NCBI RefSeq assembly: GCF_052425735.1
Contig: NC_135765.1
Location: 1,240,001-1,304,000, forward strand
From: Oculina patagonica
Taxonomy: Eukaryota
Length of the DNA stretch: 64,000 nucleotides
Direction of reading: 5' to 3'
Notes under the pieces: model-generated
Databases searched by the model: none
The model's input: only the letters and a program-made list of their open reading frames with translations
What the model was told of the DNA's origin: nothing
In this document: positions 17,006 to 58,000 of the stretch, one piece after another
How the letters are laid out: the number at the start of each line of letters is the position of its first letter
How positions within the stretch are numbered: position 1 is the first letter of the stretch
Program-made: the position numbers and the translations under genes

Positions 17006-18104
17006 TATACAATCATGTACTAGTTGGATCAATCGGAAGAGTTGGAATCAAACATTTGAAGACACAGTGTACCTTGATAAAGTACTCTTCATTTACGTGT
17101 AGCAGAAACATACATTATTAGAGAATTTATAGCTGTGAAAACATAAGCATCAGTCATCATTTTGCCCATTTATTTTATATTCTCTTATTGTATTGAACAC
17201 TCCAGTTTAAGCATTAGCTAATTTAAGTATTTTTGTCGCCTGTAAATATTCTTTTGCTTTTTTTATTTCTAATACTACTTAACCTTTTAGGGGGTCGTAT
17301 ATTTGCTTGGAATAATAAAATCCACGTTGTGGTATTCAGTTATCACGAGTCTTGCCTTAGTTGAAATAATTATTTTCAAGTATGAACTGCACATTACTAT
17401 TGTGCTGTTAAGTGGGTAGTATGCTGTGCAGTTTAACTCATGTTGGTATTTTGTCTTGCCCTGTGGGCTTGTCAAAGAACAGTACACCGCATAAAACTAT
17501 CACCTGATTAACTTAGCCAATGAAGCTGTAGGCTAAAGTGGCTTAAATCAGACGATATTCCACAAGATTGAGCAGGATAATTGATTTGTTACTCAACAAA
17601 TTGCGAAAGAAACACATTTTACAGTTACAGCTTGAAAAAACTGGTTATGCAGCGCTTTGCAAGACTTCTGACAGATATTGACAAACCTACTTGTATCACA
17701 GAATGTACAGATGACGTATAACGATGACTTTCTGACCATATTGGGCATCGTAACAAATTGTTGAATAATAATGCTGATGTTTGTACTCCTGCCCCTAAAA
17801 TGTTTTTTAACTACAAGTTGCTTGCCCAGTCTATATAGCGAGATGAGTTCATTTCTTGTGTGCTTCTGAACCGAAACTTGATTAAAAAAAAAAACAAATG
17901 AGACCAATATTTTTACGCTGTGGACCAAACAAGCGGGTTCAAGAACCTCTCCCATACTGAACAACTAATTGTTGTCACTAAAGTTCACATGTATATCTCT
18001 TCTCCCTTTTGAAACCGTTCGTAGGAACTAAGCAAAAAGAAACTCGGGCATACTAAACAGTCCTACCATCTTAGAGATGAATGTTAAGTCCGTGCCAACG
18101 CTAT

Positions 18105-18870
18105 CATGCACGTCCCGAGTCGACCAATGATCCATATATCTGAAATCTAACCTCTAAACTTTGCTTTGGACTTCCACAAGTTGCACACTCAACCTTATCA
18201 CTGTCGTTTCTCACCATGCAGCTATCGCACTCCCAGCGTCCATCTGGTGAAGAAACAGAGATTGAATTTGACGCTTGATTAAACGAACCAAAAGCGAAAA
18301 GCGGTTGCCCGTCATATTCAGTTGTTCCAGCCGATCCAAATGTAAACCCTGAAGCAGTAGATGGTGTAGCCGATCCAAATGTAAACCCTAAAGCAGTAGA
18401 TGGTGTAGCCGATCCAAATGTAAACCCTAAAGCAGTAGATGGTGTAGCCGATCCAAATGTAAACCCTAAAGCAGTAGATGGTGTAGCCGATCCAAATGTA
18501 AACCCTAAAGCAGTAGATGGTGTAGTCGAGTCAAATGTAAACCCTAGTAGATGGCGTAGTCGATGTAAGTGAAGTCCCTGAACCAGAAGATGGTGTAGTC
18601 GATACCAGTGAAATCTCTTAACGAGTGGATGGTGTATCCGATCTTGATGAAAACAACGGTTTCGCCTTTTTCTTTTGGTCTTGACTGTGTTCTGCTTCTG
18701 GCGTTCGACTTACACAAGCAACACACTCAATCGTAACACTCTCGTTTCTCTCCATGCAAATGTCACACTCCCACGACCCTTTAGCAGCTTTAGTGTAACG
18801 TCTACTCTTCTCTGGCTTACAGTCATTCCCTTTAAAATATGCCACTATATCTCTTGGCTTGTCATCTTTT
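18105..18870 (-). pseudogene. Decayed former C-terminus of gene A (zinc finger, FG repeats, zinc finger)
   Basis: Past the stop, shifted frames encode GSWECDICMERN..CVAC, 39-bp [13 protein letters not shown] repeats and WECDSCMVRNDSDKVECATC, matching the C-terminus of gene B. Frameshift near 18868, in-frame TAA at 18618, further frameshift near 18545. Confidence 0.8.
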
Positions 18871-21800
18871 TCTTCGACAACCATGACATCCAGGACAAAC
18901 TTCATGTTTTGCATAATTGAAGAAATTAGAGGGGAGCCAAAGGCGGGAGGCTTTCTCACGATCGGCCATTGAGGAACGAACTTCATAAACAAGGAGACAG
19001 TCTTCATCTTGCCTTTTAATACCTTTTAGATGACTGTTGGGTGTCAAGAAACGTCCGCCAGTGCAATGAGTAGGAAGGTTAGCAGCACCAGCATTTTCTT
19101 TAGTGGAATGGATTGGAACAGGATTCGTTGAGGTTGTCAGCAAATTCCCCTGACTTGGTGAAAGCGAAAGTTGAGTTTGAGATGACTGTAAGGGTTCTAT
19201 TGGAAGGGAAGACAAGAAATTCGTAACATCGTCAAATATCTCCTTAAACTTTCCAGCAATTTCTGCTGACTTAAACCTGATGGCTAGCTTCTCTGGTCTC
19301 GCCTCATCCTCAGCATAGTCTGCTGGAGTGTACCACACCCAAGATCTGTCTGATCCAACATTGGGTTTAAGCTCCATTCCAGCATTAATGTTGTGATTGG
19401 CACACAACTTTTTGATGTGCTCCCTTCGCATGAGAACTCTTCCTTGGCCGGTTTTTGGATGACGCAAAAGCCTTACATCTCCAACACCTCTTTCTTTCCA
19501 TTCAGCTGAATCGGCAACAAAACGGTACAGCTTTGCTCGCTCAGAAAACAGCACCTCCAGATCTTCCTCGCCTGTGACAACTTGGATTGCATCTGGAAGA
19601 GGAATGATTGGTTTAAAATAAGGCTGTGCGTGACTAGGACTCTCGGGAGACAGAGGTAACGTAGGTGACAATGGCGATTTAGGTTTGGGAGGTGGCGACT
19701 TTGGCGAAACCTGCAGACTGAATGTAAACTTGGCTGGAGTACTTGTGCCAAATGGAAGATCGGTCAAAACACTCTCTTGGGAGTGAGGTGTTGATGGCTT
19801 CTGTGGAGTCGTCCCCTGCCTACTTGGAGAGGACATCTTACTTGGAGACAAGTAAATTTCATCATCTTGTTTATCATCACATGATTCTCCTCGTCCAATG
19901 GTAAAATATTGGAAAACTGAAGTGGCTGGAGATGAGTCCTTGTTGAAATCCTGAAAAGCGTTTTGTTCTACTGACTCAACGACAGGAGCAGTCGTAGTTG
20001 TCGATGCAACCTTTGTTGTTGTAGACAAAAGTTCAACAGATCCAGAAGCAGACTTGATGGAGCTGCACGAAATGCATTTCGAGTCCCCTGCGTTGTTTTC
20101 AACACAACACACTTCACAAGTCCATGCAGCGGGAGCTGCAGCAAATGTCGACATAAATTGTTTATAAAGTGCTCCTTGTTGATCTTTAGCTGGTTCCATT
20201 TCAGAACGAATTTCGGAAGACAAGGTCTCCTGAAGGTCCTCAAATACTTCCTTGAACTTCCCAGCAATTTCTGCCGACTTTAACTTGATGGCGAGCTTCT
20301 CTGGTCTTGCCTCACCCTCAGCATAGTCAGCTGGAGTGTACCACACCCAAGATCTATCTGATCCAACATTGGGTTTAAGCTCCATTCCAACATTAATGTT
20401 GTGATTGGCACACAATTTTTTTATGTGCTCCCTTCTCATGAGAACTCTTCCTTGGCCTGATTTTGGATGACGCAAAAGCTTAACATCTCCAACACCTCTT
20501 TCCTTCCACTGACCCGAGTCTGCATCAAAACGGTACAGCTTAGCTCGCTCAGAAAACAACACCTCCAGTCCTTCTTCTCCTGTGACAACTTGGATTTCAT
20601 CTGGAAGAGGAATGATTGGCTCAAAATAAGGCTCTGCGTGACTAGGAATCTCAGGAGACAACGGTGACGTAGGTGGTGACGACGATTTAGGTTTGCGAGG
20701 TGGAGACTTTGGGGAAACCTGCAGACTGAATGTAAACTTGGCTGGAGTACTTGTGCCAAATGGACGATTGGTCAGAAGACACTCCTGGGAGTGAAGTGTT
20801 GATGGCTTCTGTGGAGTCGTCCCCTGCCTGCTTGGAGAAGAGGTCTTACTTGGAGACAAGTAAATTTCATCATCTTGTTTATCATCACATGATTCTCCTC
20901 GTCCAATGGTAAATAGTTGTGAGCTGCCAAATCTTTTTACTTTGGGTGATTGGAAAATTGAAGTGGCTGGAATTGAGTCCTTCTTGAAATTTTGAAAAGC
21001 GTTTGGTTCTACTGATTCAACGACAGAAGCATTTGTAGTTGTCGGTTTAACCTCTGCTGTTTTAGACAAAGGTTCAACAGATCCAGCAGCAGACTTGATG
21101 GAGCTACACGCAATGCATTTCGAGTCCGCTGCGTTGTTTTCAACATAACACACTTCACAAGTCCATGCATCGGGAGCTGCAGCAAATGTCGACAAAAACT
21201 GTTTATAAAGTGTACACCCAGCTTCTTGTTGATCTTTAGCTGGTTCCGTTTCAGGACGATTTTCTGAAGACAAGGTCTCCTGAAGGTCCTCAAATACGTC
21301 CTTGAACTTCCCAGCAATTTCTGCCGACTTTAACTTGATGGCGAGCTTCTCTGGTCTTGCCTCACCCTCAGCATAGTCAGCTGGAGTGTACCACACCCAA
21401 GATCTATCTGATCCAACATTGGGTTTAAGCTCCATTCCAGCATTAATGTTGTGATTGGCACACAACTTTTTGATGTGCTCCCTTCGCATGACAACTCTTC
21501 CTTGGCCTGATTTTGGATGACGCAAAAGCTTTATATCTCCAAGACCTCTTTCCTTCCACTGACCCGAGTCTGCATCAAAACGGAACAGCTTGGCTCGCTC
21601 AGAAAACAGCACCTCCAGACCTTCTTCACCTGTGATAACTTGGATTTTATCTGGAAGAGGAATAATTTGCTCAAAATGAAGCTTTTCATCACCTTGGCCT
21701 TCGACGTCTTCACCAAGTGCATCAAAAAGTTGCGTACGAGCTCCTTGAAATGGTTCATGGCTGTCCTTCTTCAGAGTCTGAGAAAATGCATTGCCTTCTT

Positions 21801-24800
21801 TTGGCTTTAGGGACGAAAATGTCAGCTGACCAAAAATAGATGATTCTCCAAACACGTGAGTGGCATGTCCACTTTTCTCTGGCTTTGGAGCATTCTCTTC
21901 AGAATGAGGCACTATAGTGTTTGTTTTGTCCTCCTTTTTAGTCAACGTTGTCGTCTCTTTGGTTATCCCACCACAACCAAGACATCCAGGGCAAACTTCT
22001 TGCTTTACATAATTGAAGAAGTTTGAGGGGAGCCAAAGGCGAGAAGCTTTCTCGCGATTTGCCATTGAGGCACGAACTTCATAAACAACGAGACAGTCTT
22101 CATCTTGCTTTTTAGTACTCTTTAGAGCACTCTGGAGCGTCATGAAACGTCTGCCTGTGAGATGAGTAGGGAGGTTAGCAGGTTCAGCATTCAGTGGGGT
22201 AGTCAGTAACTTCCCTTGACTTGGTGAAAACGGAGGCTGGGTTTGAGAGGACTTCATGGGTGGCATTGGCGAGGAAGACTCCAAGGAATCTTCATTTTCT
22301 TCTCCATCATCTTCGCCCTCAGCTGATGTATAACTCAGACTCTCGTCCGTGGAATCCTCTGATTCTTCAATGAATTCTTCATAATCGTCGCATTCTTCTA
22401 CAATGACGGTGGAAATAGGTTTGGTAACCTCTTGAAGAGACGTCTCTTCTCCGGGCTCGTTCACAACGTAGGGTGTAAAGTTAAAACCTCCAGCCTGGGA
22501 TTCCTGGTTGGCAAAATCTTGTTGTTGCTTAGCAGCAGCAAGGAGTCGAAGTAGTTCACTACTGGAAAAGTCGACTTCAGGTCTTGAATTTGAAGAAAAT
22601 GCCCCTTGAAGTGTGAATGGCTGTGAGAACATCTCAGATGTCTGCAGAGTATTCTGAGGCTGTGGTGTTTCAGAATCCAAGAAAGGTGGTGTTGTTTGGT
22701 ACCAGGGATCGCCACTTTTAGCCCAAGTTGTGGCCCCACCCAGAGGCGCACAGGCGTCTAGTTGACCAAACTGAAAGGTACCAGTTGGTTGCTCCGAATC
22801 GTGTCCTGATGCACTCACTCCATATATTTGTGGCGAGCTACTCACGCTTGTTTTTAGTGGCCCTGTTAAACTCAATCCTAATGTTTGTGAAAAGGTACTG
22901 GTGCTTGTATCCAGTGGTCCTATCGCACTCCCTCCAGATAAAAATGGCGAGCTACTCACGCTTGTTATCAGTGGCCCTGTTGCACTCAATCCTAATGTTC
23001 GTGAAGAGTTACTGGTGCTTGTATCCAGTGGTCCTATGGCACTCGCTCTAGACAAAAATGTCGAGCTACTCACGCTTGTTTTCAGTGGCCCTGTTGCACT
23101 CAATCCTAATGTTTGTGAAGAGGTACTGGTGCTTGTATCCAGCGGTCCTATGGCACTTCCTCCAAATGAAAATGGCGAGCTACTCACGCTTGTACTCAGC
23201 ACTCCTTTGGAACTCAATCCTAATGTTTGTGAGGAGGTACTGGTGCTTGTATCCAGTGGTCCTATCGCACTTCCTCCATTCCCAAATAAAAATGGCGAGC
23301 TACTCACGCTTGTTTTCAGTGGCCCTGTTAAACTCAATCCTAGTGTTTGTGAAGAGGTACTGGTGCTTGTGTCCAGCGGTCCTATGGCACTCCCTCCAAA
23401 TGAAAATGGCGAGCTACTCACGCTTGTACTCAGTGGCCCTATTGCACTGAATCCTAATGTTTGTGAAGAGGTACTGGTGCTTGTGTCCAGCGGTCCTATG
23501 GCACTCCCTCCAAATGAAAATGACGAGCTACTCACGCTTGTTTTCAGTGGCCCTGTTGCACTGAATCCTAATGCTTGTGAAGAGGTACTGGTGCTTGTGT
23601 CCAGCGATCCTATGGCACTCCCTCCAAATGAAAATGACGAGCTACTCACGCTTGTTTTCAGTGGCCCTGTTGCACTCAATCCTAATGTTTGTGAGGAGGT
23701 ACTGGTGCTTGTATCCAGTGGTCCTATCGCACTTCCTCCAAATAAAAACGGCGAGCTACTCACGCTTGTTTTCAGTGGCCCTGTTAAACTCAATCCTAGT
23801 GTTTGTGAAGAGGTACTGGTGCTTGTGTCCAGCGGTCCTATGGCACTCCCTCCAAATGAAAATGGCGAGCTACTCACGCTTGTACTCAGTGGCCCTATTG
23901 CACTGAATCTTAATGTTTGTGAAGAGGTACTGGTGCTTGTATCCAGCGATCCTATGGCACTCCCTCCAAATGAATATGGAGAGCTACTCACGCTTGTACT
24001 CAGCACTCCTTTGGAACTCAATCCTAATGTTTGTGAGGAGGTACTGGTGCTTGTATCCAGTGGTCCTATGGCACTTCCTCCAAATGAAAATGGCGAGCTA
24101 CTCACGCTTGTACTCAGCACTCCTTTGGAACTCAATGCTAATGTTTGTGAGGAGGTACTGGTGCTTGTATCCAGCGGTCCTATGGCACTTCCTCCAAATG
24201 AAAATGGCGAGCTACTCACGCTTGTACTCAGCACTCCTTTGGAACTCAATCCTAATGTTTGTGAGGAGGTACTGGTGCTTGTATCCAGTGGTCCTATGGC
24301 ACTTCCTCCAAATGAAAATGGCGAGCTACTCACGCTTGTACTCAGCGTCCCTTTGGAACTCAATGCTAATGTTTGTGAGGAGGTACTGGTGCTTGTATCC
24401 AGCGGTCCTATGGCACTTCCTCCAAATGAAAATGGCGAGCTACTCACGCTTGTACTCAGCACTCCTTTGGAACTCAATCCTAATGTTTGTGAGGAGGTAC
24501 TGGTGCTTGTATCCAGTGGTCCTATGGCACTCCCTCCAAATGAAAATGTCGAGCTACTCACGCTTGTACTCAGCGCTCCTTTGGAACTCAATGCTAATGT
24601 TTGTGAGGAGGTACTGGTGCTTGTTTCCAGCGATCCTATGGCACTCCCTCCAAATGAAAATGTCGAGCTACTCACGCTTGTACTCAGCGCTCCTTTGGAA
24701 CTCAATGCTAATGTTTGTGAGGAGGTACTGGTGCTTGTTTCCAGCGATCCTATGGCACTCCCTCCAAATGAAAATGTCGAGCTACTCACACTTGTACTCA

Positions 24801-27800
24801 GCGCTCCTTTGGAACTCAATGCTAATGTTTGTGAGGAGGTACTGGTGCTTGTTTCCAGCGATCCTATGGCACTCCCTCCAAATGAAAATGTCGAGCTACT
24901 CACGCTTGTACTCAGTGCTCCTTTGGAACTCAATCCTAATGTTTGTGAGGAGGTACTGGTGCTTGTTTCCAGCGGTCCTATGGCACTCCTTCCAAATGAA
25001 AATGTTGAGCTACTCACGCTTGTACTCAGTGCTCCTTTGGAACTCAATCCTAATGTTTGTGAGGAGGTACTGGTGCTTGTTTCCAGCGGTCCTATCGCAC
25101 TCCTTCCAAATGAAAATGTTGAGCTACTCACGCTTGTACTCAGCGCTCCTTTGGAACTCAATCCTAATGTTTGTGAAGAGGTACTGGTGCTTGTTTCCAA
25201 CGGTCCTATGGCACTCCTTCCAAATGAAAATGTTGAGCTACTCACGCTTGTACTCAGTGCTCCTTTGGAACTCAATGCTAATGTTTGTGAGGAGGTACTG
25301 GTGCTTGTTTCCAGCGATCCTATGGCACTTCCTCCAAATGAAAATGTCGAGCTACTCACGCTTGTACTCAGTGCTCCTTTGGAACTCAATCCTAATGTTT
25401 GTGAAGAGGTACTGGTGCTTGTGTCCAACGGTCCTATCGCACTCCTTCCAAATGAAAATGTTGAGCTACTCACGCTTGTACTCAGTGCTCCTTTGGAACT
25501 CAATCCTAATGTTTGTGAAGAGGTACTGGTGCTTGTGTCCAACGGTCCTATCGCACTCCTTCCAAATGAAAATGTCGAGCTGCTCACGCTTGTACTCAGT
25601 GCTCCTTTGGAACTCAATCCTAATGTTTGTGAAGAGGTACTGGTGCTTGTGTCCAACGGTCCTATCGCACTCCTTCCAAATGAAAATGTTGAGCTACTCA
25701 CGCTTGTACTCAGCACTCCTTTGGAACTCAATCCTAATGTTTGTGAAGAGGTACTGGTGCTTGTGTCCAACGGTCCTATCGCACTCCCTCCAGATAAAAA
25801 TGGCGAGCTACTCACCCTTCTATTTAGTGGTCCTGTTGAACTTACTCCAAATTTTTGTGGTGAGTTACTCACGCTTGTATACAGGGGTCCTGTTAAACTC
25901 ACTCCAAATTTTTGGGGCGAGCTACTCACGCTTGTATTCAGGGGTGCTGTTGTACTCACTCCAAATGATTGTGGGGAGGTACTCAAGCTTGTATTCAGTG
26001 GTCCTGTTGTACTCACTCCAAATGATTGTGGGGAGGTACTCAAGCTTGTATTCAGTGGTCCTATTGCACTCACTCCAAATGATTGTGGGGAGGTACTCAA
26101 GCTTGTATTCAGTGCGCGTGTTGCACTCACTCCAAATGATTGTGGAGAGGTACTCAAGCTTGTATTCAGTGGTCCTGCTGTACTCACTCCAAATGATTGT
26201 GGGGAGGTACTCAAGCTTGTATTCAGTGGTCCTGTTGTACTCACTCCAAATGATTGTGGGAAGGTACTCAAGCTTGTATTCAGTGGTCCTGTTGTACTCA
26301 CTCCAAATGATTGTGGGGAGGTACTCAAGCTTGTATTCAGTGGTCCTGTTGTACTCACTCCAAATGATTGTGGGGAGGTACTCAAGCTTGTATTCAGTGG
26401 TCCTGTTGTACTCACTCCAAATGATTGTGGGGAGGTACTCAAGCTTGTATTCAGTGGTCCTGTTGTACTCACTCCAAATGATTGTGGGAAGGTACTCAAG
26501 CTTGTATTCAGTGGTCCTGCTGTACTCACTCCAAATGATTGTGGGGAGGTACTCAAGCTTGTATTCAGTGGTCCTGTTGTACTCACTCCAAATGATTGTG
26601 GGGAGGTACTCAAGCTTGTATTCAGTGGTCCTGTTGCACTCACTCCAAATGATTGTGGGGAGGTACTCAAGCTTGTATTCAGTGGTCCTGTTGCACTCAC
26701 TCCAAATGATTGTGCGGAGGTACTCAAGCTTGTATTCAGTGGTCCTGTTGCACTCACTCCAAATGATTGTGGGAAGGTACTCAAGCTTGTATTCAGTGGT
26801 CCTGTTGTACTCACTCCAAATGATTGTGGGGAGGTACTCAAGCTTGTATTCAGTGGTCCTGTTGCACTCACTCCAAATGATTGTGGGGAGGTACTCAAGC
26901 TTGTATTCAGTGGTCCTGTTGTACTCACTCCAAATGATTGTGGGGAGGTACTCAAGCTTGTATTCAGTGGTCCTGTTGTACTCACTCCAAATGATTGTGG
27001 GGAGGTACTCAAGCTTGTATTCCGTGGTCCTGTTGTACTCACTCCAAATGATTGTGGGGAGGTACTCAAGCTTGTATTCAGTGGTCCTGTTGTACTCACT
27101 CCAAATGATTGTGGGAAGGTACTCAAGCTTGTATTCCGTGGTCCTGTTGTACTCACTCCAAATGATTGTGGGGAGGTACTCAAGCTTGTATTCAGTGGTC
27201 CTGTTGCACTCACTCCAAATGATTGTGGGAAGGTACTCAAGCTTGTATTCAGTGGTCCTGTTGTACTCACTCCAAATGATTGTGGGGAGGTACTCAAGCT
27301 TGTATTCAGTGGTCCTGCTGTACTCACTCCAAATGATTGTGGGGAGGTACTCAAGCTTGTATTCAGTGGTCCTGTTGTACTCACTCCAAATGATTGTGGG
27401 GAGGTACTCAAGCTTGTATTCCGTGGTCCTGTTGTACTCACTCCAAATGATTGTGGGGAGGTACTCAAGCTTGTATTCAGTGGTCCTGTTGCACTCACTC
27501 CAAATGATTGTGGGGAGGTACTCAAGCTTGTATTCAGTGGTCCTGTTGTACTCACTCCAAATGATTGTGGGAAGGTACTCAAGCTTGTATTCAGTGGTCC
27601 TGCTGTACTCAGTCCAAATGATTGTGGGAAGGTACTCAAGCTTGTATTCAGTGGTCCTGCTGTACTCACTCCAAATGATTGTGGGAAGGTACTCAAGCTT
27701 GTATTCAGTGGTCCTGCTGTACTCAGTCCAAATGATTGTGGGGAGGTACTCAAGCTTGTATTCCGTGGTCCTGTTGTACTCACTCCAAATGATTGTGGGA

Positions 27801-30067: not shown

Positions 30068-30105
<38 letters not shown>

Positions 30106-30633
30106 TAATAATAATAATAATAATAATAATTTTTATTTATTCATTTATAATAATAACAACAACTTTATTTCACATAATATTTTAAAAAAGGTAACATGTG
30201 GATAAAAAGGTTCTAAAAATTAACTATAATACCAATACTAATACTAATAATTATAAAAGTAAATTATAATTATCTTCAATTTTTCCCAGAATCCTTTGAG
30301 GCATTTTTAAAAAAGCTTAATAACTTTGGCAGACTACCACAAGATAACATTTGCCATGAAATATCTTCCCATGTCACAACTAGGGTAATGAGGTTATCGA
30401 TCACGTGACAATTTCTAAATAAGCGTTTATGCTTGCTTTGCATATTTGAGGTTCTGTTTGTGCGGGACATTTAAACATTACCAGGTGCCATCTTCAACTA
30501 AAAGTTTAAGGGGGCAATGCACATGAGAGACAAAGTCGGAAGACTAGGCCGAGGGCTATAGAAACTTGACGTTTTATCACACGGCAACGAAGCTTTGCAG
30601 GGTATACTTTTACCGGTTTCACTTGTAATAATG

Positions 30634-30685
<52 letters not shown>

Positions 30686-30755
30686 CAGTTAATTTATTAA
30701 AACTCTTTTGCAGGTAAAATACAACATCAGATTCCTAATTAGAAATCAATACAGT

Positions 30756-30843
<88 letters not shown>

Positions 30844-33427: not shown

Positions 33428-33539
33428 TACTTATAAACAAAATGAAGGAATAGTACATACATGTATTTATTAATGGCTGGTATATCAAACCGCTTTCGTG
33501 TTGTCGCTGATCGTAACTCCTTCCCGTGCAGCCATTACC

Positions 33540-46400: not shown

Positions 46401-49400
46401 GTGAAGTCGATCCAAATGTAAACCCTGAACCAGTAGATGGTGTATCCGATCCAAATGTAAACCCTGAACCTGTAGATGGTGTAGCCAATCCGAATGAAAA
46501 CAACGGTTTCGTAACTTTCGTTTGGCCTTGACGTTGGTCTTGACGTGGTTCTGCGCCTGATTTTGGACTTCTACAAGCAACACACTCAACTTTATCACTG
46601 TCGTTTCTCACCATACAGATGTCGCACTCCCAAGATCCTTCAGCAGCTTTAAACTTAGTGAGAAGATCTTCTTTGACTTCTTCCTGCCTTTTGTCTTCCT
46701 GAATTGCATTCAACGGTGTCTGGTTTTTCAACATTTCTGGGCACGAACTGGGTGTCTTCAACATTTTTTGGCATTCTTCAAACGTCTCTTTGAATAGCTT
46801 AGCGATGTCTTCTGATTTAAACCTCACCGCAAGTACTTCTGCATTGCACTCCTGCTCAGAAAAGTCTGCCAGAGTGCTCCACACCCAGGATTTCTCTGAC
46901 CCTGCATTGGGCTGTAGTTTCATGTCAGTTGTTATCTGATGATTTGCACAAATTTTCAACACCTGATCGCGACGCATCAGAACTCTCATCTTTCCTGATT
47001 GTCTATTTCTCAACAACTTTATATCCCCGACTCCTCGTTCTTTCCATTGCTTGTCCCCTGATACAAATCGATACAATTTGGTTCTGTAGGAACTGAACTC
47101 TGGTACAAATCGATACAACTTGGCTCTGTGGGAAAACATGACTTCTTCGTCTTCTTCGCCAGTTTTTACATCAATCTTGTCAGGAAGTGGAATAATTGGC
47201 TCAAAGTGAGGGCCATCATGGTCATCTTCTTCTCCTTTATCTTCTTCTTCTTCTTCTTCTTCTTCATCATCATCATCATCATCTTCTTCATCTTCATCTT
47301 CTTCTTCGCCTGGTTTTAGAGTTCCACAAGCAACACACTCAACTTTATCACTGTCGTTTCTCACCATACAGATGTCGCACTCCCAAGATCCTTCAGCAGC
47401 TTTAAACTTAGTGAGAAAATCTTCTTTGACTTCTTCCTGCCTTTTGTCTTCCTGAATTGCATTCAACGGTGTCTGGTTTTTCAACATTTCTTGGCACGAA
47501 CTGGGTGTCTTCAACATTTCTTGGCATTCTTCAAACGTCTCTTTGAATTGCTTAGCGATGTCTTCTGATTTAAACCTCACCGCAAGTTGTTCTGCATTGC
47601 ACTCCTGCTCAGAAAAGTCTGCCAGAGTGCTCCACACCCAGGATTTCTCTGACCCTGCATTGGGCTGTAGTTTCATGTCAGTTGTTATCTGGTGATTTGC
47701 ACAAATTTTCAACACCTGATCGCGACGCATCAGAACTCTCATCTTTCCTGATTGTCTATTTCTCAACAACTTTATATCCCCGACTCCTCGTTCTTTCCAT
47801 TGCTTATCCTCTGATACAAATCGATACAATTTGGCTCTGTGGGAAAACATGACTTCTTCGTCTTCTTCCCCAGTTTTCACATCAATCTTGTCAGGAAGTG
47901 GAATAATTGGCTCAAAGTGAGGACCGTCATGATCATGGTTACCCTCTGTTGTGACATGGTCATCGTCAGCATTCCGAGCTGCAAACAGCGGAGAACCTGC
48001 ACCAGAACCAAACAGAAAGTTTGACTTGCTTAGGGTTGATATCTCTTCAGGATCATCACTTCTTGTTGGCTGGTCTTGTTTGCTGTGATTTTAAAATAAA
48101 AGTGTGGTGTAAATGACATTGCAAAAGGCCCTCTTAAAGGCCCTCTAGACACTAGAACACTGCGAGTGTTGCGTGACTTGAACACTGCGAGTTTTGCGTT
48201 ACATTATAATTCATTGTGTCGTACATGTAGTATGTTCAACTTTCTTGTATGAGCCTGCGATCCTTGTGGTTGCCTCGTGGTTTCAGTTGGCCGCCATGTT
48301 TGTATAGACAGAGATTTGGTGATTAAAACCTAGTATTTCTGCTGGCAATCGTCTTCTCTCATTTACAACAAAAAGAATTTAAATTAATTTCCTAATGGCT
48401 GTTATAAAACTTAAACCAAAACAGCCATATTGAAAACAAAACAAAAACTTAGGTGAAAGATATGGAAAATGCAAATGAGCCAATAAATGATTGGTTTTGG
48501 CTTTTAAATAAGTGGCTGAAAGAGTCTTTACTCCAATTGTAATTGATGTGTCACAAAATCTTAGTCACGGGAACAAAATTGACGAGAGAAAATAACCTGA
48601 CCTTAAATTTACCAAAACTTACGCATGCCGTATTTCACTTAAAAATGCACTTTATTTGTCAGAAATTGTGAAATGTCATGAACAGTCTTCACCGTAATTT
48701 ATATGTTAGTATTATTCACACTGACAGACCATTACCTACCTTGCAACTGTCTCTGATTGACTGGAGCAGGTTTCAGGCGACAAGTGTTCATAGCCAAATA
48801 AGTTATTTGGCAATTCCAGGCATTTGGCTGTCTTCCTTTGATCATCTGTAACCTCTGCTGTTTTAGACAATTGTTCAACAGATCCAACAGCAGACTTGAT
48901 GGAGCTGCATGCAATGCATTTCGAGTTCCCTGCGTTGTTTTCGACGTAACACACTTCACAAGTCCATGCATCTGGAGCTGCAACAAATGTCGACAAAAAT
49001 TCTTTATAAAGTGTACACCCAGCTCCTTGTTGATCTTCAGCTGGTTCCGTTTCAACGACAGAAGCAGTCGTAGTTATCGGTTTGACCTCTGCTGTTTTAG
49101 ACAAAGGTTCAACAGATCCAGCAGCGGACTTGATGGAGCTGCACACAATGCATTTCGAGTTCCCTGCGTTGTTTTCGACGTAACACACTTCACAAGTCCA
49201 TGCATCTGGAGCTGCAACAAATGTCGACAAAAATTCTTTATAAAGTGTACACCCAGCTCCTTGTTGATCTTCAGCTGGTTCCGTTTCAACGACAGAAGCA
49301 GTCGTAGTTATCGGTTTGACCTCTGCTGTTTTAGACAATTGTTCAACAGATCCAACAGCAGACTTGATGGAGCTGCATGCAATGCATTTCGAGTTCCCTG

Positions 49401-52400
49401 CGTTGTTTTCGACGTAACACACTTCACAAGTCCATGCATCTGGAGCTGCAACAAATGTCGACAAAAATTCTTTATAAAGTGTACACCCAGCTCCTTGTTG
49501 ATCTTCAGCTGGTTCCGTTTCAACGACAGAAGCAGTCGTAGTTATCGGTTTGACCTCTGCTGTTTTAGACAAAGGTTCAACAGATCCAGCAGCGGACTTG
49601 ATGGAGCTGCACACAATGCATTTCGAGTTCCCTGCGTTGTTTTCGACGTAACACACTTCACAAGTCCATGCATCTGGAGCTGCAACAAATGTCGACAAAA
49701 ATTCTTTATAAAGTGTACACCCAGCTCCTTGTTGATCTTCAGCTGGTTCCGTTTCAACGACAGAAGCAGTCGTAGTTATCGGTTTGACCTCTGCTGTTTT
49801 AGACAAAGGTTCAACAGATCCAGCAGCGGACTTGATGGAGCTGCACACAATGCATTTCGAGTTCCCTGCGTTGTTTTCGACGTAACACACTTCACAAGTC
49901 CATGCATCTGGAGCTGCAACAAATGTCGACAAAAATTCTTTATAAAGTGTACACCCAGCTCCTTGTTGATCTTCAGCTGGTTCCGTTTCAACGACAGAAG
50001 CAGTCGTAGTTATCGGTTTGACCTCTGCTGTTTTAGACAATTGTTCAACAGATCCAACAGCAGACTTGATGGAGCTGCATGCAATGCATTTCGAGTTCCC
50101 TGCGTTGTTTTCGACGTAACACACTTCACAAGTCCATGCATCTGGAGCTGCAACAAATGTCGACAAAAATTCTTTATAAAGTGTACACCCAGCTCCTTGT
50201 TGATCTTCAGCTGGTTCCGTTTCAACGACAGAAGCAGTCGTAGTTATCGGTTTGACCTCTGCTGTTTTAGACAATTGTTCAACAGATCCAACAGCAGACT
50301 TGATGGAGCTGCATGCAATGCATTTCGAGTTCCCTGCGTTGTTTTCGACGTAACACACTTCACAAGTCCATGCATCTGGAGCTGCAACAAATGTCGACAA
50401 AAATTCTTTATAAAGTGTACACCCAGCTCCTTGTTGATCTTCAGCTGGTTCCGTTTCAACGACAGAAGCAGTCGTAGTTATCGGTTTGACCTCTGCTGTT
50501 TTAGACAAAGGTTCAACAGATCCAGCAGCGGACTTGATGGAGCTGCACACAATGCATTTCGAGTTCCCTGCGTTGTTTTCGACGTAACACACTTCACAAG
50601 TCCATGCATCTGGAGCTGCAACAAATGTCGACAAAAATTCTTTATAAAGTGTACACCCAGCTCCTTGTTGATCTTCAGCTGGTTCCGTTTCAACGACAGA
50701 AGCAGTCGTAGTTATCGGTTTGACCTCTGCTGTTTTAGACAAAGGTTCAACAGATCCAGCAGCGGACTTGATGGAGCTGCACACAATGCATTTCGAGTTC
50801 CCTACGTTGTTTTCGACGTAACACACTTCACAAGTCCATGCATCTGGAGCTGCAGCAAATGTCGAGCTATTCACTGTTCCTTCGTCACTCTTTCCAAGTG
50901 TAAATGGTACGCTATTCACTGGTCCTGCATCACTCTTTCCAAGTGTAAATTTGGGCTTGCTTTGATCTGGAATCGGGCACAATGTAGGATGGCCAGTGAC
51001 AGTGGGACAGCCATAATTATTCTGAAGGAGGAGAGATAGAAAAAAGTGCGATCTGATAAATTCGAGTATTGAAGTATTGAAGGGCGAATATGACACTGGC
51101 AACAACGAAATACTGTGTCAAGCAAGTTTTGAAACCTTGGAGGTTGCTCCCAAAGCAACACTGATTTGAGTATATATTAAGTAGGACGTTTTCGTAATGT
51201 ACGTTCGTTGCAAACGAAAAGCAAAAATAGCACGTTACTTATGCCTGGATTTGCAATTTCTTTTGACCTTTCTGTAAAAGATACAGATACTTCTTGATCA
51301 TAAGGAAGTTAAAGGAGAAAACGTTTTCCTTACTGATGATCACTGAAGTTATAAGTTATTCGTTAATTTTCCAAGTCTAAACTGTATTGTATTGTATTGA
51401 AATTGCCTTACGTTGCGTTGCTTTTGCATTGTGTTGTATTACCTAATCTGAAGCCCAATTGTTGTATCGCAGTGAAATGAACACCACATACCTTTAGTAC
51501 TTCTCTTGACAGCTTCTTTTCTGTCGTCTCTCCAGTTTGAGAGTTTGGGTGATTAAGTTTAGCCTGAGGCTTCGACAGGGACTTAGACTGGTTAATTTCG
51601 TGGGACGACCTGTGAAGCTTATTTTCTGCCCCTGTTAGTTTATCGAACACAACCTTAAGTTGAGCGTAAAATCCCTCTTTAACCGCACTTAGCATCTCCT
51701 ACGAAGAAAGAGCAAGACCAAAAATAAGTAATAGTAGGTTATATGGGGATGAGGATTATCTGATAAGGTTTAAAGGACGGAAAATTGAAATTCACCTGGC
51801 TACCTCGTTTCATCTCACAATAGAACCCAAACATGACGCCTCAGTGCTAGTTTAAATCTGCGTCTGCGTTCGGGCCTAGAGGCCCATCAGGCCGTAGTTG
51901 AACCGGTTTCCAAAGAATTAAGTGACAAAATGTATTTCTACTCCCCCTGGCCAGATGGGATTTATCCCAGCATTAAATTAAACAACTGGGATGATAGAGG
52001 CACTGTGAGAGTAAAGTGTCTTGCCAAAGAACACAACGCAGGCTAGTGACCCAGGTGAGGGCTTGAATCCGGAATGCTCGATCCGGAGTCCAGTTCGCTA
52101 ACTGCGCCTCCCATGCATGACTCCTCAACGCCATCACAGATAATAACAAACAGACCCCATTAACTATGTATGTTTAAGCGATATAGGTCCATGCAAATCC
52201 TTAAATTGTCGTAAAGTTTACGGAGAGTGGAAATGGAAACAAATTTGCTGAAACTGTAGACGTTTTTAGCAACGTGTTAAAACTTACGTTAAGGAAGCCG
52301 TCAAACTCCTTTCGCGTAGCCATCTCAGCCTTCGCTGTGGAAAGTATAGTTTCCAGTGCCTCTATGCTGTGTTTGTTCTTGTTCCTCTCTGCGATGAAAA

Positions 52401-53686
52401 GAATCTGCGGGAACAAATATGTACAGGTATGTTCAGCTTTTCGAAATCAGTGATGTATAATAGTGGTCGTGGTCCAGATGAAGAATGACAGCTTTCCCAC
52501 AATGCAAAACCGCGTTCATTCCCAGCACGGGATCGCAAGATGGCGGGTTTTCTTCGTGAATTTGTAGATGCTCTCTACGGATAATGATATGGATTAATAA
52601 CCCCCTAATTATCATGCTTTTCCCGTTTTTTGGCCAGTGAGATGCAAAACTACCCTTGGTGTCGGAGATAGGTTGTCGGGATATAGGGAGGGAGGTGCCA
52701 GGTACTCCCCTGTATGGGTCAGCCGGTCTGTGGTACTGCAGCCGTCGGTATTTGCATCATGTAAAGCACAATGCTGAGAGTGCTTTTCGGTAGATATCTA
52801 AGGATAACTCTTCTGTTGGGTAAAAAATACCAGAGCTGTATATAAGGAATTTTTCAGCTTCCTGAAAATGCAGCAATTTCGTTTCGCGTTGACGGTAACT
52901 AGTTCAATCAGAAAACCACAGACATATTGTGAAAACGATAAAGAAAAAGGGTTACGAAGAAAAAAACTCTGAAGTAAACAGCGATTATTTATAGGTAACT
53001 TATCAACAATGTTACGGTTTGACATGAACCTTTACCTTGTACTCCTCCGCTTGTTGAGTCATAGACTTTAATTTCTCTGCCAAATCCTTCTCAGCTATCT
53101 CTTTTTCCATCACCTATACCAACCCATGTGAGAACAAAAGAATCAGATGAATTTATGATCAGAAATTGATAAAGAAAGGGAAGAAAACAAGACTTAAGGG
53201 AACTTGAAGTAGCCAGGTTACCTGATAACTTACCTCTTTTTTGGCTTCCAAAAGTTCTTTCTTTGTTTTTGCCAAAGTCGACTCCATGTTAATCGCTCTT
53301 TCCTCCAGTTGCTCTCTTTGATTATCAATAATATCTAAGTGTTGCACAAACGAGAGAGATCTGTTCTAAACTTACAACAGACATCATAGGTTTGGTTTCA
53401 TTTGACGAGTTTTCCTTACCAGTAAATGAGCTACAACGTATTAACTGTACATGTATCCCAACATTTTCCCAACGTCAGTATAGTGTCTGGATTTGTAATT
53501 TGTACATTAATCTTCACATACGCGTTTGACTACACGGGATAGTTGTTTGGACACCTAATAAGTTTATGTGTTACCTATCTGAGACTGGTAGCCTTCCAAT
53601 TTCTTCTCCAGTCTGACAATCTTTCCTTGAAGCGCCCGTTCTCTCGCAGAAAGGGACTGCTCCAAGACGTGAGGATCTCCATCCAT
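43444..53686 (-). CDS. RanBP2/Nup358-derived protein B (about 2511 aa): coiled coil, 9 tandem zinc fingers, 2x(RanBD + zinc finger), FG/GLFG array, terminal zinc finger
   Basis: Exons 53686-53575, 53334-53234, 53113-53036, 52404-52288, 51698-51492, 51021-48740, 48082-43444 join in frame (7536 nt). RanBD motif WKERGVGDIKLLRN..KICANH twice; WECDICMVRNDSDKVECVAC fingers. Small extra exons between 51492 and 51021 cannot be excluded. Confidence 0.85.
43900..46490 (-). repeat. FG-repeat array: 39-bp units (about 45165-46490) followed by about 35 36-bp GLFG/GVFG units (about 43900-45165)
   Basis: GSATPSTGSGFTF and GSAAPSTGPEFTL 13-mers, then SGLFGSAAPSTT 12-mers. Confidence 0.95.
48850..50870 (-). 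repeat. 234-bp (78-aa) tandem repeat, each unit carrying one RanBP2-type zinc finger, 9 fingers
   Basis: DAWTCEVCYVENNAGNSKCIxC recurs at exact 234-bp spacing. Confidence 0.95.
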
Positions 53687-54559
53687 TTCTCAGAACTATA
53701 TTGTTTCTAGAACTACCAAACTGCGTTTGTGGACAAAAAAAAGGGTTGGAATCGTTAGTACAACACTGAAATTACTAGAACGTGATTTTATAACTGCCGT
53801 TAAACTGTCCAGTCTGTTCCCCAACCACACAGCCGCGCACAGCTCTACCGCCGCCCCCCACTCCAGCCCAGAGAGTAGCGATGTGTGACGGCTTTGATGC
53901 GGCAACTTCTACCCGTGAAAACGCCGAAATAAATGTTGTAGTTTAATCAGGTCAAAATGATTTTAAACTAGTTTGATTTGTATTTTCCTTTGTTCCAGAT
54001 TTATCACCATTATCCTTAAACAAAGGAAAATACAAATCAAATTAGTTTAAAATCATATACCCGCCTATCCCCGGATGTGTCGCAAATAACCAAGGACAAC
54101 ACCTAAAAAGTGTACCAAATGAGACGAAAAATTGATAGGGGAAAGTTATCCAACAGCACATTAGACTGACATCGCTGGTAAATAAAATATTTTCGGGGGT
54201 ACAGATGTCTTTATACCTAGGCTGATCTATATTTCAGAAATGGCAAATCATCTCTCATCTGCTCATTGCTTCCATAAAAAGAGTGTACAAACACCTCATT
54301 TTGCCCATAACGATTTAATGTAAAGGCTTTAATATTTGAATAATCCCAGCTATCTTATCGGATACAGACAAGTTCGACAACTGCGACAATAACCTAAGTA
54401 AAACGTCGACAAGATATTGTACAATAACAGTACATGTAAACCTGATCAAGCCTCTTCCCTCCGTGTGACTGAATTAATACGGTCCTCACCGCTTCTCATG
54501 ACTTGTTATAGTGCTTGAATGCGAAGTTCCACTACATTATACACCAAACAACAGATACC

Positions 54560-55044
54560 TGAGTTTAAAATGCGCCGTTGCTTCCTTCTTCGTAGACTGC
54601 ACAAAGAGGGTTTCCTAGAAAACAGGAAGTACAGACGTTGTGTGACGGGTGCGTGACCATGGATGAAATTATTTGTTTCCTTGCTATTATCATTTTTTAT
54701 CTTTATTTTTATGATCCACAAAAAGACTCGACTTTCGAAGATTGAACACGATATATATCCCCAAACAACAGATAAACGTTACAAGCAAATCATTTGTACC
54801 TCTGTCACGCACATCATGCACGTGGATTGCATGACCTTTTGCATGACCGTGGTCAGGCTGCTTACTGCACAGCGGAGAATGTTTGAAACTCATGCGTTAA
54901 GTCAAACGCCGACTTCGCGGTCTGGAAATTTTGAGATTTTGGTGCGATTTGTGCAAGGAAATGTACGAAAAATCGAACAGGCTTCCTAGCTAACTTGTTG
55001 TCGATTCTTTTGCACTGAGTTCTACGTTTTTAGAATCTTGAAAA
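54560..55044. promoter_or_regulatory. Putative bidirectional promoter, copy 2 (gene B / RANBP2)
   Basis: Shares the blocks AAACAGGAAGT and CAGCGGAGAATGTTTGAAACTCATGCG...GAAATGTACGAAAAATCGAACAGGCTT with copy 1. Confidence 0.55.
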
Positions 55045-58000
55045 ATGGTTTGGACAAAGGACGAGGTCGATAAATACGTGGTCCAAGTGGAACGGAACTG
55101 CGCCAACGCGCACGAGGTGTGCTCATTCATTTCGTGCATTTTGCCTCTCAGCTAAACCTTGAAAGATTAACAATTTCCTTTACGTATCTTACAGCGAAAT
55201 CTGAAGGGATTTGCCTTTGCAAGACTTTACAAGGAAGCATCGGACAATGAGAGCGCTAAACGGTTAGTTATCATGGTTATCTTTGTTCCCTTGACACTTC
55301 CTGTTTTGTGACTCGACAAATTTTGACAGAAGCAAAGCTTAATTATAAACGAAAAACGCTCACGATTAATTTAACACAATTATTGTTGATTGAATTTTGA
55401 TGTCCGGCACCGTTGAAAAATCTTTTTGTGCTATGTTGAATCTCGTTTTCTCTTTGAGATGCTTGTTGCTAGCGTTTCACTGGGGCAGATAAGGTATGCG
55501 TACATGTAAAAAGTGCATGCTAAGCATGTTTTTCTATGATCTGCAACTAAGATAATTCTTCTAAGATATCATTAACTTTGCCCAACAGATACCTGGAAGC
55601 TTACATCAGTGAAAGTGAAGGTGATTTCAGGTAAGTGAGTAAGGTCTACAAAAAAATCGGTTGCCATTTAGTATTATTTGTATTTGTGTTTGTTGTTAAG
55701 TAAATCAACCTGCACATAGACCCTAGCCTTCCAGTCTGAATCTCAGGATATCAACTCTCCTTAACTTACTGATTGTTCTACATTTGTTTTAAACTTAGTA
55801 CTGGGAATGTAGCGTACATAAAAAAATATCTCCTTGTCAATGATTTTCTTCATTTTCATTATATTTAACAATACCGTAGAATTGCGGTTATAAGCCCTGG
55901 GCTTATACAACTTCGTAAGGGGTTTTGGGTGGGCTTTTAAACGGAGGGGCTTATATCTGGGAGGGCTTATAAGCAGAATGAAAAAAACGTTTCGAAAAGA
56001 GCCACGGGAGTGTTGATGGAAATATGTTTTTAAGTTAAAAACGCATAATAAAGCAACATTTAGCCCTATTCAGTACTGCCATCCAGTAGAGGGGGCTTAT
56101 ATCCGGAGGGGCTTATAATCGGATGTATTTTTTTGTTTCTAAGCAGATGGGCCTATAACCGGAGGGGCTTATAAGTGGGGGGGCTTATAACCGGAATTTT
56201 ACGGTATAATAATAATAATAATAATAACAGTTCTTAGCACGCACTTTACATACGTCTCAGTGCGTTTACATTTGAAATTTAAAAGTAAAAAAAAAAACCC
56301 GATTTAAATTACAATCAGATAAAAATACGCTAAGGATAACCTAATTTAATTACAATTGATAAAAAATAAAAATAAAAATGACAATAAAAACATGGCGAAC
56401 TTGTTAAAAATATATCGACCTAAATAAATATGTCTTTAAAATTAAAATAAAATTTAACAAACTTCATGAATTTGTGGCTACATAAGTCATCATGTTTATG
56501 CAAAATTGAATTGATCAACATTATTTACTTATATTTCCAGGGGTCATTGTCTTATGGGGCAGTTATATGAAGGAATGGGACAGTTGGAAAAGGCTGTGGC
56601 CTCATATAGAAGGTTCTAGTATTTTTTTTATATACCGTATTTTTTAAACAATAATTCCACTCGCGCTTGTTGGATATGAGATCGTTATAGCCAACATGGC
56701 GCTATGCGCCTTGTTGACCATCTATCATCTCATATCCAAGCACGCTAGTGGAATAATTGTTAAGTATTTTATTCAAAGTACAAGATGCTACAAGCTTATG
56801 ACAAGTCTAGGATAGAAAATGTTGCACATAAATCAAATCTACAGTACCCGCTCCGAGATAAGAGCACCATCAAACTCATTGACAAAAAGCAGTCAATGCT
56901 TTGTTGCATTATAGCCAATGCATTTAGAAACAAGTTTTTCATCAACACATTTCACCTGTTATTAATTTTCAATAACAATTATTATAAAATTGTAACTTGC
57001 TACAGTCGGGAAAGACAAGAAAACTGTCACATTTGAAACGTGTAGGATAACCACAGCCACAATGTTATATGCAACAAAGTTATAACTGTTTACACTAATC
57101 CTAAGAGCCAGTCATCAACGCAACAACCTGCGCTCAGTCTAGATAGTTGCGATCAGAAGTGTACATTGCATTTGGTGACTGTGTATTCACAAGGAGTGCA
57201 CAGCTCAGGATCTGGCTGTTCTTTTAACGTACCAGTATGCAAGAAGGTACACTGTATCTTGAAGATTGTCTATATACACATATTTGTGAGAAACATCTAT
57301 CACATAAATTTATTTGTAACAAACTTTTTTGTAACTAGCTTTATGTTTGACCTATAACAATAACATTTATTGTTATAATAATTTACCAGTACTTAATGTT
57401 TTATTTTATGTATTATTATTGTTTTAGGTCCTTGGAATTAAACAACACTCAAAAGGAATTGGTTTTAAAAGGTTAGCTTACCAGCATATAGCCAGACAAA
57501 AATTCTTTCCAAGGCAATATCAGAAAAACCTCACTTTTATATTTAAAGTATTTTATCAGTGTATAGCCTCCTACAAAAACCAGAATAAATATATAAATTC
57601 AATTTTTTTTACCGAGGCAAGTGCCTGGGGTCACCTGTTACTACCTACGGCCGTGATTACCTACAATTATAATCATGGATGTCTTCTTTGTTACCATCAC
57701 ACAGTATTCTTGAAGATTTTCTTACAAATTTTGGCTTTTGAGAGCCCCCTCCTCCTTGGAATTTCTAATGACCTTCCATGGGGTGGGTATGGATATTTTC
57801 TGGAACTGCACAATTAAAAGCAAATTATGGGGCTTAACTGGAATTTCTAGAGGGGTGGGGGGATTCAAACCAAAAACCTTCCATGTGAGGGCTATGGATA
57901 TTTTCTGGAACAACACATTACACTTTGGTTGTTTTTGTCTTCAAAAATTATGCAGTTCAGCAGAGAAAGAGATCAAATCCCATAAAAGCACTTATTTCTA

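Follow-up and report, generated by a model that had tools for sequence, protein, structure and literature searches.

The locus described here lies in a stretch of 64,000 nucleotides of the stony coral Oculina patagonica (NCBI RefSeq assembly GCF_052425735.1, contig NC_135765.1, positions 1,240,001 to 1,304,000 of the forward strand), which is called the window below and whose numbering is used throughout. It raises the question of why two neighbouring copies of one gene cassette seem to have evolved at opposite tempos on their two strands. In each copy, the first exons of RANBP2 (Nup358) on the plus strand stand head-to-head with a minus-strand gene, A in unit 1 and B in unit 2, which joins a coiled coil derived from the golgin gene GCC2 to a RANBP2-like body. 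The original prediction held that a tandem duplication had been followed by rapid, possibly adaptive, evolution of these derived genes, the RANBP2 exons showing no amino-acid change. The best explanation found, to which a probability of roughly 0.78 is given, is an old tandem duplication of the cassette of chimera and RANBP2, with the contrast between the strands arising from gene conversion and unequal purifying selection, not from adaptation.

Two paralogous units of one cassette

Comparison of the window with itself by BLAST found that 17892-39460 and 42951-57481 match as a colinear series of blocks in a single orientation (Table 1), so that the predicted tandem duplication of the whole divergent cassette (about 17.9-39.5 and 42.9-57.5 kb) is real. 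Moreover, weak homology (64%) was followed by sensitive alignment as far as 39690 in unit 1 and 58095 in unit 2, stopping at the exon-6 acceptor of the unit-2 RANBP2 gene, and unit 1 ends about 200 bp further right than had been proposed. The downstream block expected at 17895-17945 and 42955-43005 was recovered as the first block of the series, while homology between the units was looked for to the left of 17892 and 42951 and none was found. The coiled-coil peptides that had been quoted for A and B lie on the minus strand where they had been placed. Furthermore, as a genome-wide search showed, the coiled-coil exons and RANBP2 exon 1 are each present in exactly two copies in the 529-Mb assembly, and the 3.3-kb spacer between the units consists largely of three high-copy interspersed repeats. 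The units are true paralogues from a tandem segmental duplication, not one locus represented twice. An assembly artefact, with the units being diverged haplotypes or a false duplication, could draw on the assembly gap at 11672-12171, shortly upstream of the units, one flank of which is duplicated at 90%, but its probability is negligible in view of the dS (synonymous divergence) of 0.42, the entirely different structures of the gene bodies, the separate conservation of A-type and B-type copies in other assemblies, and the presence of both units on one 34-Mb contig, with the full RANBP2 continuing from unit 2 only. The grounds for rejecting the haplotype explanation were divergence and conservation across species rather than read depth.

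The deposited 'E3 SUMO-protein ligase RanBP2-like isoform X2 [Oculina patagonica]' (3459 residues) matched plus-strand exons between 55045 and 81692 with 100% identity and so extends 17.7 kb beyond the end of the window. Since this protein maps entirely from unit 2, the plus-strand gene of that unit is the complete canonical RANBP2. The plus-strand exons of unit 1 are a truncated copy of RANBP2 exons 1-5, all five of which retain intact splice sites.

On the minus strand, five coiled-coil exons (m1 to m5) with canonical splice sites and matching phases were found in both genes. In gene A, m5 is continuous with a giant exon of 3296 codons, which contains in order the end of the coiled coil, about 102 FG-type units of 19 residues, an IR-like motif, three Ran-binding domains (RanBDs) and two zinc fingers, a second IR-like motif and the stop codon, whereas m5 of gene B is a separate exon. 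Pfam identified three Ran_BP1 domains (E 8e-134) and two Zn_ribbon_RanBP domains in the giant exon, and the IR1-M profile (PF12185) scored 25.2 bits at a cut-off of 25, two IR-like motifs being recognized by pattern. Its FG array, with 77 FG dipeptides in units of 19 or 38 residues, gave no Pfam FG match. Gene B has two RanBDs (PF00638, E 3e-101 by Pfam), RanBP2-type zinc fingers (PF00641) numbering 9 + 3 by motif and 8 + 3 by Pfam, and FG repeats with a period of 36/39 bp (43598-46491, by Tandem Repeats Finder, TRF); against Pfam Nucleoporin_FG, the gene scored 108 bits. No IR motif was found in it by Pfam or by pattern. The exon joins of the gene B model from m1 to exon 7 are the same in the deposited 'hypothetical protein ACROYT_G026986 [Oculina patagonica]', a model that stops before the open frame of gene B does.

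Divergence, gene conversion and selection

The 99 codons of RANBP2 exons 1-5 differ between the units by 8 synonymous and no replacement changes (dS 0.148, replacement divergence dN 0, dN/dS 0), while the 157 aligned codons of the coiled-coil exons differ by 30.5 synonymous and 39.5 replacement changes (dS 0.419, dN 0.113, dN/dS 0.27), or at 21% of residues. Both observations of the original prediction, namely the unchanged RANBP2 exons and the many differing residues in the coiled coil, are borne out, with much stronger constraint on the N-terminal exons of RANBP2 than on those of the coiled coil. However, these two parts of a unit do not share one time base. Their dS values are 2.8-fold apart (Fisher p=0.012), and noncoding divergence (K) rises from about 0.08 in the 181 nt upstream of RANBP2 and in introns 1-2 to 0.16 in intron 3, at least 0.29 in the remnant of intron 5 and about 0.36 in the introns of the coiled coil, so that the unit has no uniform neutral divergence along its length.

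Further evidence came from a 7.6-kb contig of a relative (GCA_044670265.1), which is colinear with unit 1 at 90-95% and carries an A-type orthologue. In its coiled-coil exons, 63 derived sites are shared with A and 5 with B (63:5:7), while in the linked RANBP2 5′ block all three sequences are equidistant (22:28:20). These incongruent patterns indicate that the duplication took place long before the species split and that the RANBP2 5′ block was homogenized around or after it. The dS gap and this contig thus point to different ages or gene conversion, the outcome that the original prediction had itself set against its claim of opposite tempos. In the same relative, the unit-1 RANBP2 copy has one replacement in 60 codons, with a noncoding divergence of several percent.

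Low divergence was also found elsewhere. Exon m3 with about 30 bp of its upstream intron (29969-30080 vs. 53033-53143) is 93% identical, the proportion of synonymous differences (pS) being 0.04 compared to 0.30-0.48 in the neighbouring exons, and this patch marks either a conversion tract of short length or a splicing element under constraint. The body of gene A differs from the canonical RANBP2 body with a dS of 0.19 (722 codons; dN 0.052, dN/dS 0.28), half of the dS between the coiled coils of A and B, and its protein is 87.7% identical to the canonical body of the same genome but only 60-72% to the counterpart in the coral Desmophyllum pertusum. For the RanBDs of gene B against the canonical ones (112-222 codons), dS ranged from 0.12 to 0.22, dN from 0.012 to 0.038 and dN/dS from 0.10 to 0.23. 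Judging from these sequence comparisons, the bodies of A and B appear to be still exchanging sequence with RANBP2 by conversion. The sharp edges of the low-divergence block (33992 and about 35072) could instead be taken as the mark of two duplications without conversion, the chimera having been copied early and the RANBP2 promoter with exons 1-4 having reached unit 1 much later. Such a history is improbable, because the old weak homology runs in register through exon 5 and intron 5 to the exon-6 acceptor, implying that an old copy of the RANBP2 5′ part was already present in unit 1. Moreover, other corals have RANBP2-like 5′ exons beside each chimeric copy, and a precise overwriting in place of an older copy would be conversion in effect.

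With regard to selection, dN/dS was nowhere above 1, being 0.27 in the coiled coil and 0.10-0.36 in the bodies, compared to 0 in the RANBP2 duplicates. A and B have changed at equal rates against Desmophyllum (22 vs. 25 nucleotides and 10 vs. 6 residues in a relative-rate test), and no asymmetry between A and B was found in relative-rate tests with Desmophyllum and a coral from ENA (ERZ25067556) as outgroups. The coiled coil is 72-75% identical between Oculina and Desmophyllum, and 3 of the first 99 residues of RANBP2 differ between them. Since the coiled coil is fast between species too, its speed is a standing property of the segment and not a burst after duplication. A single duplication of one age, followed by fast and perhaps adaptive evolution of the derived genes with the RANBP2 exons remaining static, would agree with a protein divergence of 21% in the coiled coil against 0% in RANBP2 exons 1-5, with the first 12 codons of A and B (8 replacements, 0 synonymous changes) and with an omega (dN/dS) of about 0.8 between A and its close orthologue. 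Nevertheless, it is made highly improbable by the dS gap, the roughly fourfold difference in noncoding K, the incongruent histories of the two linked parts in the relative's contig, the overall omega of 0.27 with equal rates in A and B, and the equal speed of the coiled coil between species. The adaptive part of the original prediction is thus not supported.

RNA evidence consisted of contigs assembled with 31-mers from public runs guessed to be RNA, which carry no depth, copy number or expression level. In a further reading, the coiled-coil head of A, or the whole gene, is drifting towards a pseudogene under relaxed constraint and B is the conserved copy of ancestral type. This reading is consistent with the comparison of A to the relative's orthologue (10.7 replacement and 3.3 synonymous changes, the neutral ratio of 4:1), the frame-broken 3′ relic of A and its shifted m4 donor. 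In addition, a TARA scaffold from a more distant coral carries a B-type m1 that is 92.7% identical to B vs. 84% to A, and its spacing to RANBP2 exon 1 equals the 1.36 kb of unit 2, near the 1.2 kb of Desmophyllum. On the other hand, the 3296-codon exon of A is uninterrupted, the A body has an omega of 0.28 against canonical RANBP2, an RNA contig shows the exons of A correctly joined, the relative-rate tests gave no surplus of changes for A, and the count on the A lineage comprises 14 differences only. A drift of gene A is judged unlikely.

Several points weigh against an old duplication shaped by conversion and unequal purifying selection. The order of its events is reconstructed, not dated. 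Exon 5 with its immediate flanks is conserved between the units (2 synonymous changes) beyond the obvious conversion tract, which calls either for another short tract or for selection acting on the truncated copy. The omega of about 0.8 for the coiled-coil exons of A against the close relative, which is based on small counts, may mean that constraint on the head of A has been relaxed recently, and the 8 replacements in the first 12 codons, too few to test, point in the adaptive direction. In Desmophyllum, exon m5 has a frame-breaking deletion of about 10 nt, so the chimera is not intact everywhere. Finally, the RNA contigs are 96-100% like the window and therefore probably derive from relatives, not from the sequenced individual, and none of those placed lies on unit 2 with its gene B.

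A GCC2 coiled coil on a RANBP2 body

Genes A and B are chimeras of GCC2 (coiled coil) and RANBP2 (body), without a GRIP domain and without the TPR region of RANBP2. The sole non-self match of exon m2 in the 529 Mb was at C8:15,907,897 (E 1.7e-4), within the GCC2 locus, and the sole non-self candidate for exon m3 in the genome was the adjacent exon there. All of m1-m5 are colinear with five exons of this locus (C8:15.907 Mb, 14.6 Mb from the window) and have the same intron phases; m2 (101 nt) and m3 (78 nt) also equal their GCC2 counterparts in length, with 54-59% identity. The product of this locus is a long coiled coil with a GRIP domain (PF01465, 67.5 bits) at its end, and the exon before the GRIP domain has a partial match to Pfam Rab_bind, human GCC2 (3BBP) being its only PDB match; the assignment to GCC2 follows from these three results. 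A look-up of the large GCC2 coiled-coil exon in the ESM Atlas returned generic coiled-coil clusters only, and that of the GRIP exon gave a weak lead. The captured part is limited to about 160 residues of internal coiled coil; at least two GCC2 exons between m4 and m5 are absent from the chimeras, as are the Rab-binding and GRIP domains. In particular, no GRIP was found by Pfam in the giant exon of A or in the two B exons.

The RANBP2 part was delimited by comparison with the canonical gene. Residues 1-870 of isoform X2 match plus-strand exons only, while A and B begin with the GCC2-like exons and are thus without the N-terminal TPR/alpha-helical part of about 870 residues that anchors Nup358 to the pore. 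Further along the gene, canonical 75078-77280 matches A 22799-20632 in inverted orientation with 92-93% DNA identity, and canonical 77911-79452 and 80283-80712 match B 48849-46344 and 47937-47508, also inverted, with 82-88% and 97%, respectively. At the protein level, A corresponds to about residues 1145-2452 of isoform X2 and B to about residues 2016-2095 (amplified) plus 2432-3266. Because the two genes match different parts of one protein, the claim that their bodies were completely remodelled stands in so far as the structures differ entirely, but mostly reflects the retention of different portions of a common RANBP2-like body, together with the growth of repeats and exchange by conversion with the canonical gene. 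Among the best 120 RanBP2-like proteins of the first search, none had a coiled-coil head. Look-ups by exact sequence for the RANBP2 proteins of Stylophora and Acropora matched no record. No paper on RanBP2 with GCC2 and coral, or on Nup358 with cnidaria gene duplication, was found at a partial coverage of the literature, by which novelty is not proven.

The same head-to-head cassette occurs in Desmophyllum pertusum, where RANBP2 has m1-m5 and a RanBD body on its opposite strand, at a distance of 1.2 kb from the RANBP2 start codon; the chimeric gene is annotated there in two, as products of 103 and 1675 residues. Another robust coral, the ENA assembly used above as an outgroup, has two cassette loci, one of which is followed by the same MCM gene as lies to the left of gene A. 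Its two loci are on different contigs and have a p-distance of 0.007 in the coiled-coil exons, with bodies of 3672 and 1928 residues whose RanBD region is 85% identical, which suggests that a duplication or conversion took place there recently and independently. With a profile of exon m1, 22 proteins were found in a library of 1.84 billion. The 17 short m1 proteins retrieved (distinct clusters, public assemblies) are open reading frames (ORFs) that read m1 into its donor site, and they include those on the relative's 7.6-kb contig and on the TARA scaffold. From its distribution among these assemblies, the fusion appears to be old and shared by several scleractinians.

In the course of events proposed, the minus-strand gene would have been chimeric before the duplication, uniting five GCC2 coiled-coil exons with an inverted RANBP2 body (FG repeats, IR, RanBDs and zinc fingers). 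The duplicated segment would have reached from the 3′ end of this gene, across the shared bidirectional promoter, to the boundary of RANBP2 intron 5 and exon 6. Complementary modules would then have been kept, namely the putative IR, three RanBDs and a huge array of 19-residue FG-type units in A, and a zinc-finger array, two RanBDs and a GLFG/FxFG-type array in B, while in-frame minisatellites grew in both genes and transposable elements (TEs) were inserted. Several parts of the locus, namely the RANBP2 5′ block, exon m3 and, with the canonical gene as partner, stretches of the bodies, would have been reset repeatedly by non-allelic gene conversion. The seemingly opposite tempos would hence be the sum of very strong purifying selection on the RANBP2 N-terminus, a divergence time of that block shortened by conversion, and ordinary, moderate constraint on the coiled coil (dN/dS about 0.27).

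Shared promoter, other features and the ape RGPD genes

A spliced contig of 539 nt joins the 5′ exon of gene A, via 81 unplaced letters, to m1 and then m1 to m4 in series, with GT..AG introns on the minus strand. RANBP2-type contigs begin at or before 34039 and splice exon 1 to exon 2 of unit 1 in three runs. Since gene A starts at 33612 and RANBP2 by 34039, about 430 bp apart and thus within 1 kb, a bidirectional promoter is indicated for unit 1 by these relatives' contigs. Moreover, the RANBP2-type contigs carry unit-1 letters at no fewer than 10 of the 12 unit-distinguishing sites in 34039-34242 and, at 1.1-1.3 kb, are longer than exons 1-5. This fits the use of the unit-1 exons as a distal promoter that splices to exon 6, contigs of relatives built from 31-mers being no single-molecule proof. 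Two intergenic stretches of unit 1 between m1 and the 5′ exon of gene A (31450-31650 and 32437-33430) showed very high contig depth in all four runs, with many loose ends, and look like inserted expressed or multi-copy repeats.

The proteins A and B would be detached from the nuclear pore complex, binding Ran, SUMO and transport receptors and pairing through their coiled coil, and the unit-1 RANBP2 copy would serve as a distal promoter. A broader reading, which is tentative and held at somewhat less than even odds, is that corals independently built and long kept GCC2-RANBP2 chimeras on the bidirectional promoter of RANBP2, from the parents of the ape RGPD genes fused in reverse. The Oculina copies would have split the modules (coiled-coil SUMO-E3/RanBD/FG in A and coiled-coil zinc-finger/RanBD/FG in B), and the unit-1 exons 1-5 would form a distal alternative promoter and first-exon set that splices over gene B to exon 6.

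Table 1. Features of the two units and their spacer, in window coordinates.
Feature	Position	Strand	Identity, evidence or remark
Unit 1 (gene A and truncated RANBP2 5′ copy)	17892..39690		colinear blocks; sensitive alignment at right end
Unit 2 (gene B, promoter and exons 1-5 of full RANBP2)	42951..58095		colinear blocks; sensitive alignment
Colinear block	17892-17946 / 42951-43006		87.5%; self-BLAST
Colinear block	18048-18257 / 43306-43552		self-BLAST
Colinear block	18285-18536 / 43547-43798		self-BLAST
Colinear block (unit 2: 234-bp repeat)	21016-21253 / 48851-50865		93%; self-BLAST
Colinear blocks, five minus-strand exons of A / B			83-93%; self-BLAST
Colinear block	33992-34846 / 54864-55750		87.7%; self-BLAST
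Colinear block	34945-35072 / 56507-56636		self-BLAST
Colinear block	39394-39460 / 57415-57481		self-BLAST
Frame-broken relic 3′ of A stop: zinc finger, 5.6 FG repeats of 39 bp, zinc finger	17892..18861	-	homology to intact 3′ end of B
Gene A giant exon	18862..28755	-	ORF of 3296 aa; Pfam
57-bp in-frame tandem array, 102.6 copies	22803..28657	-	TRF; translation
Gene A exon m4, donor shifted 18 nt relative to B	29254..29352	-	splice sites; RNA contig
Gene A exon m3, 78 nt, low-divergence patch vs. B (pS 0.04)	29972..30049	-	splice sites; RNA contig
Gene A exon m2, 101 nt, length and phase of GCC2 exon	30876..30976	-	splice sites; RNA contig
Gene A exon m1, GCC2-derived coiled coil, ATG at 31269	31158..31284	-	splice sites; RNA contig
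Gene A 5′ non-coding exon	33522..33612	-	539-nt spliced contig of a public run
RANBP2 exon 1, unit-1 copy	34173..34244	+	spliced exon 1-exon 2 contigs in three runs
RANBP2 exon 2, unit-1 copy	34324..34391	+	
RANBP2 exon 3, unit-1 copy	34690..34731	+	contig loose end at 34391 reads into exon 3
RANBP2 exon 4, unit-1 copy	34980..35051	+	
Degenerate long interspersed nuclear element in intron 4 of unit-1 copy	35486..38794	+	Pfam RVT_1, zf-RVT
RANBP2 exon 5, unit-1 copy, last of truncated copy	39407..39450	+	acceptor and donor intact
Spacer, three high-copy interspersed repeats	39700..41768		dozens of genome copies at 90-99% identity
Third, isolated 100-bp fragment of RANBP2 upstream/5′ untranslated region	41764..41862	+	self-BLAST
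Gene B last exon: two RanBDs, zinc fingers, acidic stretch, about 75 FG repeats, terminal zinc finger, stop	43444..48082	-	
Gene B exon 6, nine RanBP2-type zinc fingers; 234-bp repeat x 8.6 at 48851-50865	48740..51021	-	TRF, Pfam, motif
Gene B coiled-coil exons	51492..53686	-	splice sites; deposited model
Gene B m5	~51492-51698	-	
Gene B m4	52288-52404	-	
Gene B m3	53036-53113	-	
Gene B m2	53234-53334	-	
Gene B m1	53575-53686	-	
Canonical RANBP2 exons 1-5	55045-55116, 55195-55262, 55589-55630, 56541-56612, 57428-57471	+	

Besides the units, other features were observed in the window. The isolated RANBP2 fragment at 41764-41862, which stands directly after the TE insertions of the spacer and is 81-83% identical to both units, may have been left behind by a more complex rearrangement. 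Within a RANBP2 intron, the minus strand has an ORF (60030-60650) that encodes a GIY-YIG nuclease domain and is probably a Penelope-like element. To the left, a gene of the MCM family (1025-10859, plus strand) is oriented convergently to gene A. A second copy of the 3′ part of the MCM gene (8384-11479), about 90% identical, lies at 12183-17690, directly after a gap of 500 N (11672-12171), representing either a real local duplication or an assembly problem, and the MCM gene region contains two long pairs of inverted repeats (3184-3630 / 4202-4651 and 5955-6265 / 7078-7391, with 94% and 99%, respectively). Finally, a palindromic element of about 170 bp, resembling a miniature inverted-repeat transposable element, occurs at 63117-63285 and 14483-14644, with about 40 other places in the genome listed at 92-96% identity.

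The hominoid genes RGPD1-8 (RANBP2-like and GRIP domain-containing) are RANBP2/GCC2 chimeras formed by segmental duplication at the RANBP2 locus, with recurrent duplication, gene conversion and lineage-specific diversification (bioRxiv 10.1101/2023.03.07.531415). The coral genes have the same two parents and are convergent with this family, but their architecture is the opposite: RGPD joins a RANBP2 N-terminus to the C-terminal GRIP of GCC2, whereas A and B carry an internal GCC2 coiled coil, with neither GRIP nor Rab-binding domain, at the N-terminus of a C-terminal RANBP2 body that has no TPR. In further contrast to RGPD, the coral fusion appears to be of independent and much older origin and common to several scleractinians, its genes lie head-to-head with RANBP2 on a shared promoter, and positive selection was looked for in them with no evidence found. 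Compared to canonical RANBP2/Nup358, A and B share the RanBDs, RanBP2-type zinc fingers and FG repeats, as well as a candidate IR E3-ligase motif in A only, and keep a DNA identity of 82-97% in their bodies, maintained by conversion. They differ from it in the absence of the pore-anchoring N-terminal part, in the division of modules between the two genes and in the great expansion of the FG and zinc-finger arrays. Likewise, m1-m5 match five exons of GCC2/GCC185 in order and intron phase, but the chimeras hold only the short coiled-coil segment of this golgin. The patchy, sharp-edged tracts of low divergence and the greater closeness of paralogues within the genome than to orthologues are those of concerted evolution among tandem or inverted segmental duplicates, which is the ordinary explanation for the contrast in tempo, with nothing unusual in it.

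The duplication with opposite tempos thus comes down to the well-known combination of an old duplication with gene conversion and unequal constraint. At the same time, RANBP2 and GCC2 have been fused twice in animals, once in apes and once in stony corals, each time through duplication at the RANBP2 locus and with opposite domain architectures, which makes the coral genes a natural comparison for the question of why this pair is prone to fusion. They also bear on what the RanBP2 body does once it is detached from the pore-anchoring domain. Furthermore, the locus is a compact example of the partitioning of modules after duplication, of large in-frame expansion of FG and zinc-finger minisatellites, and of concerted evolution among three paralogous bodies.

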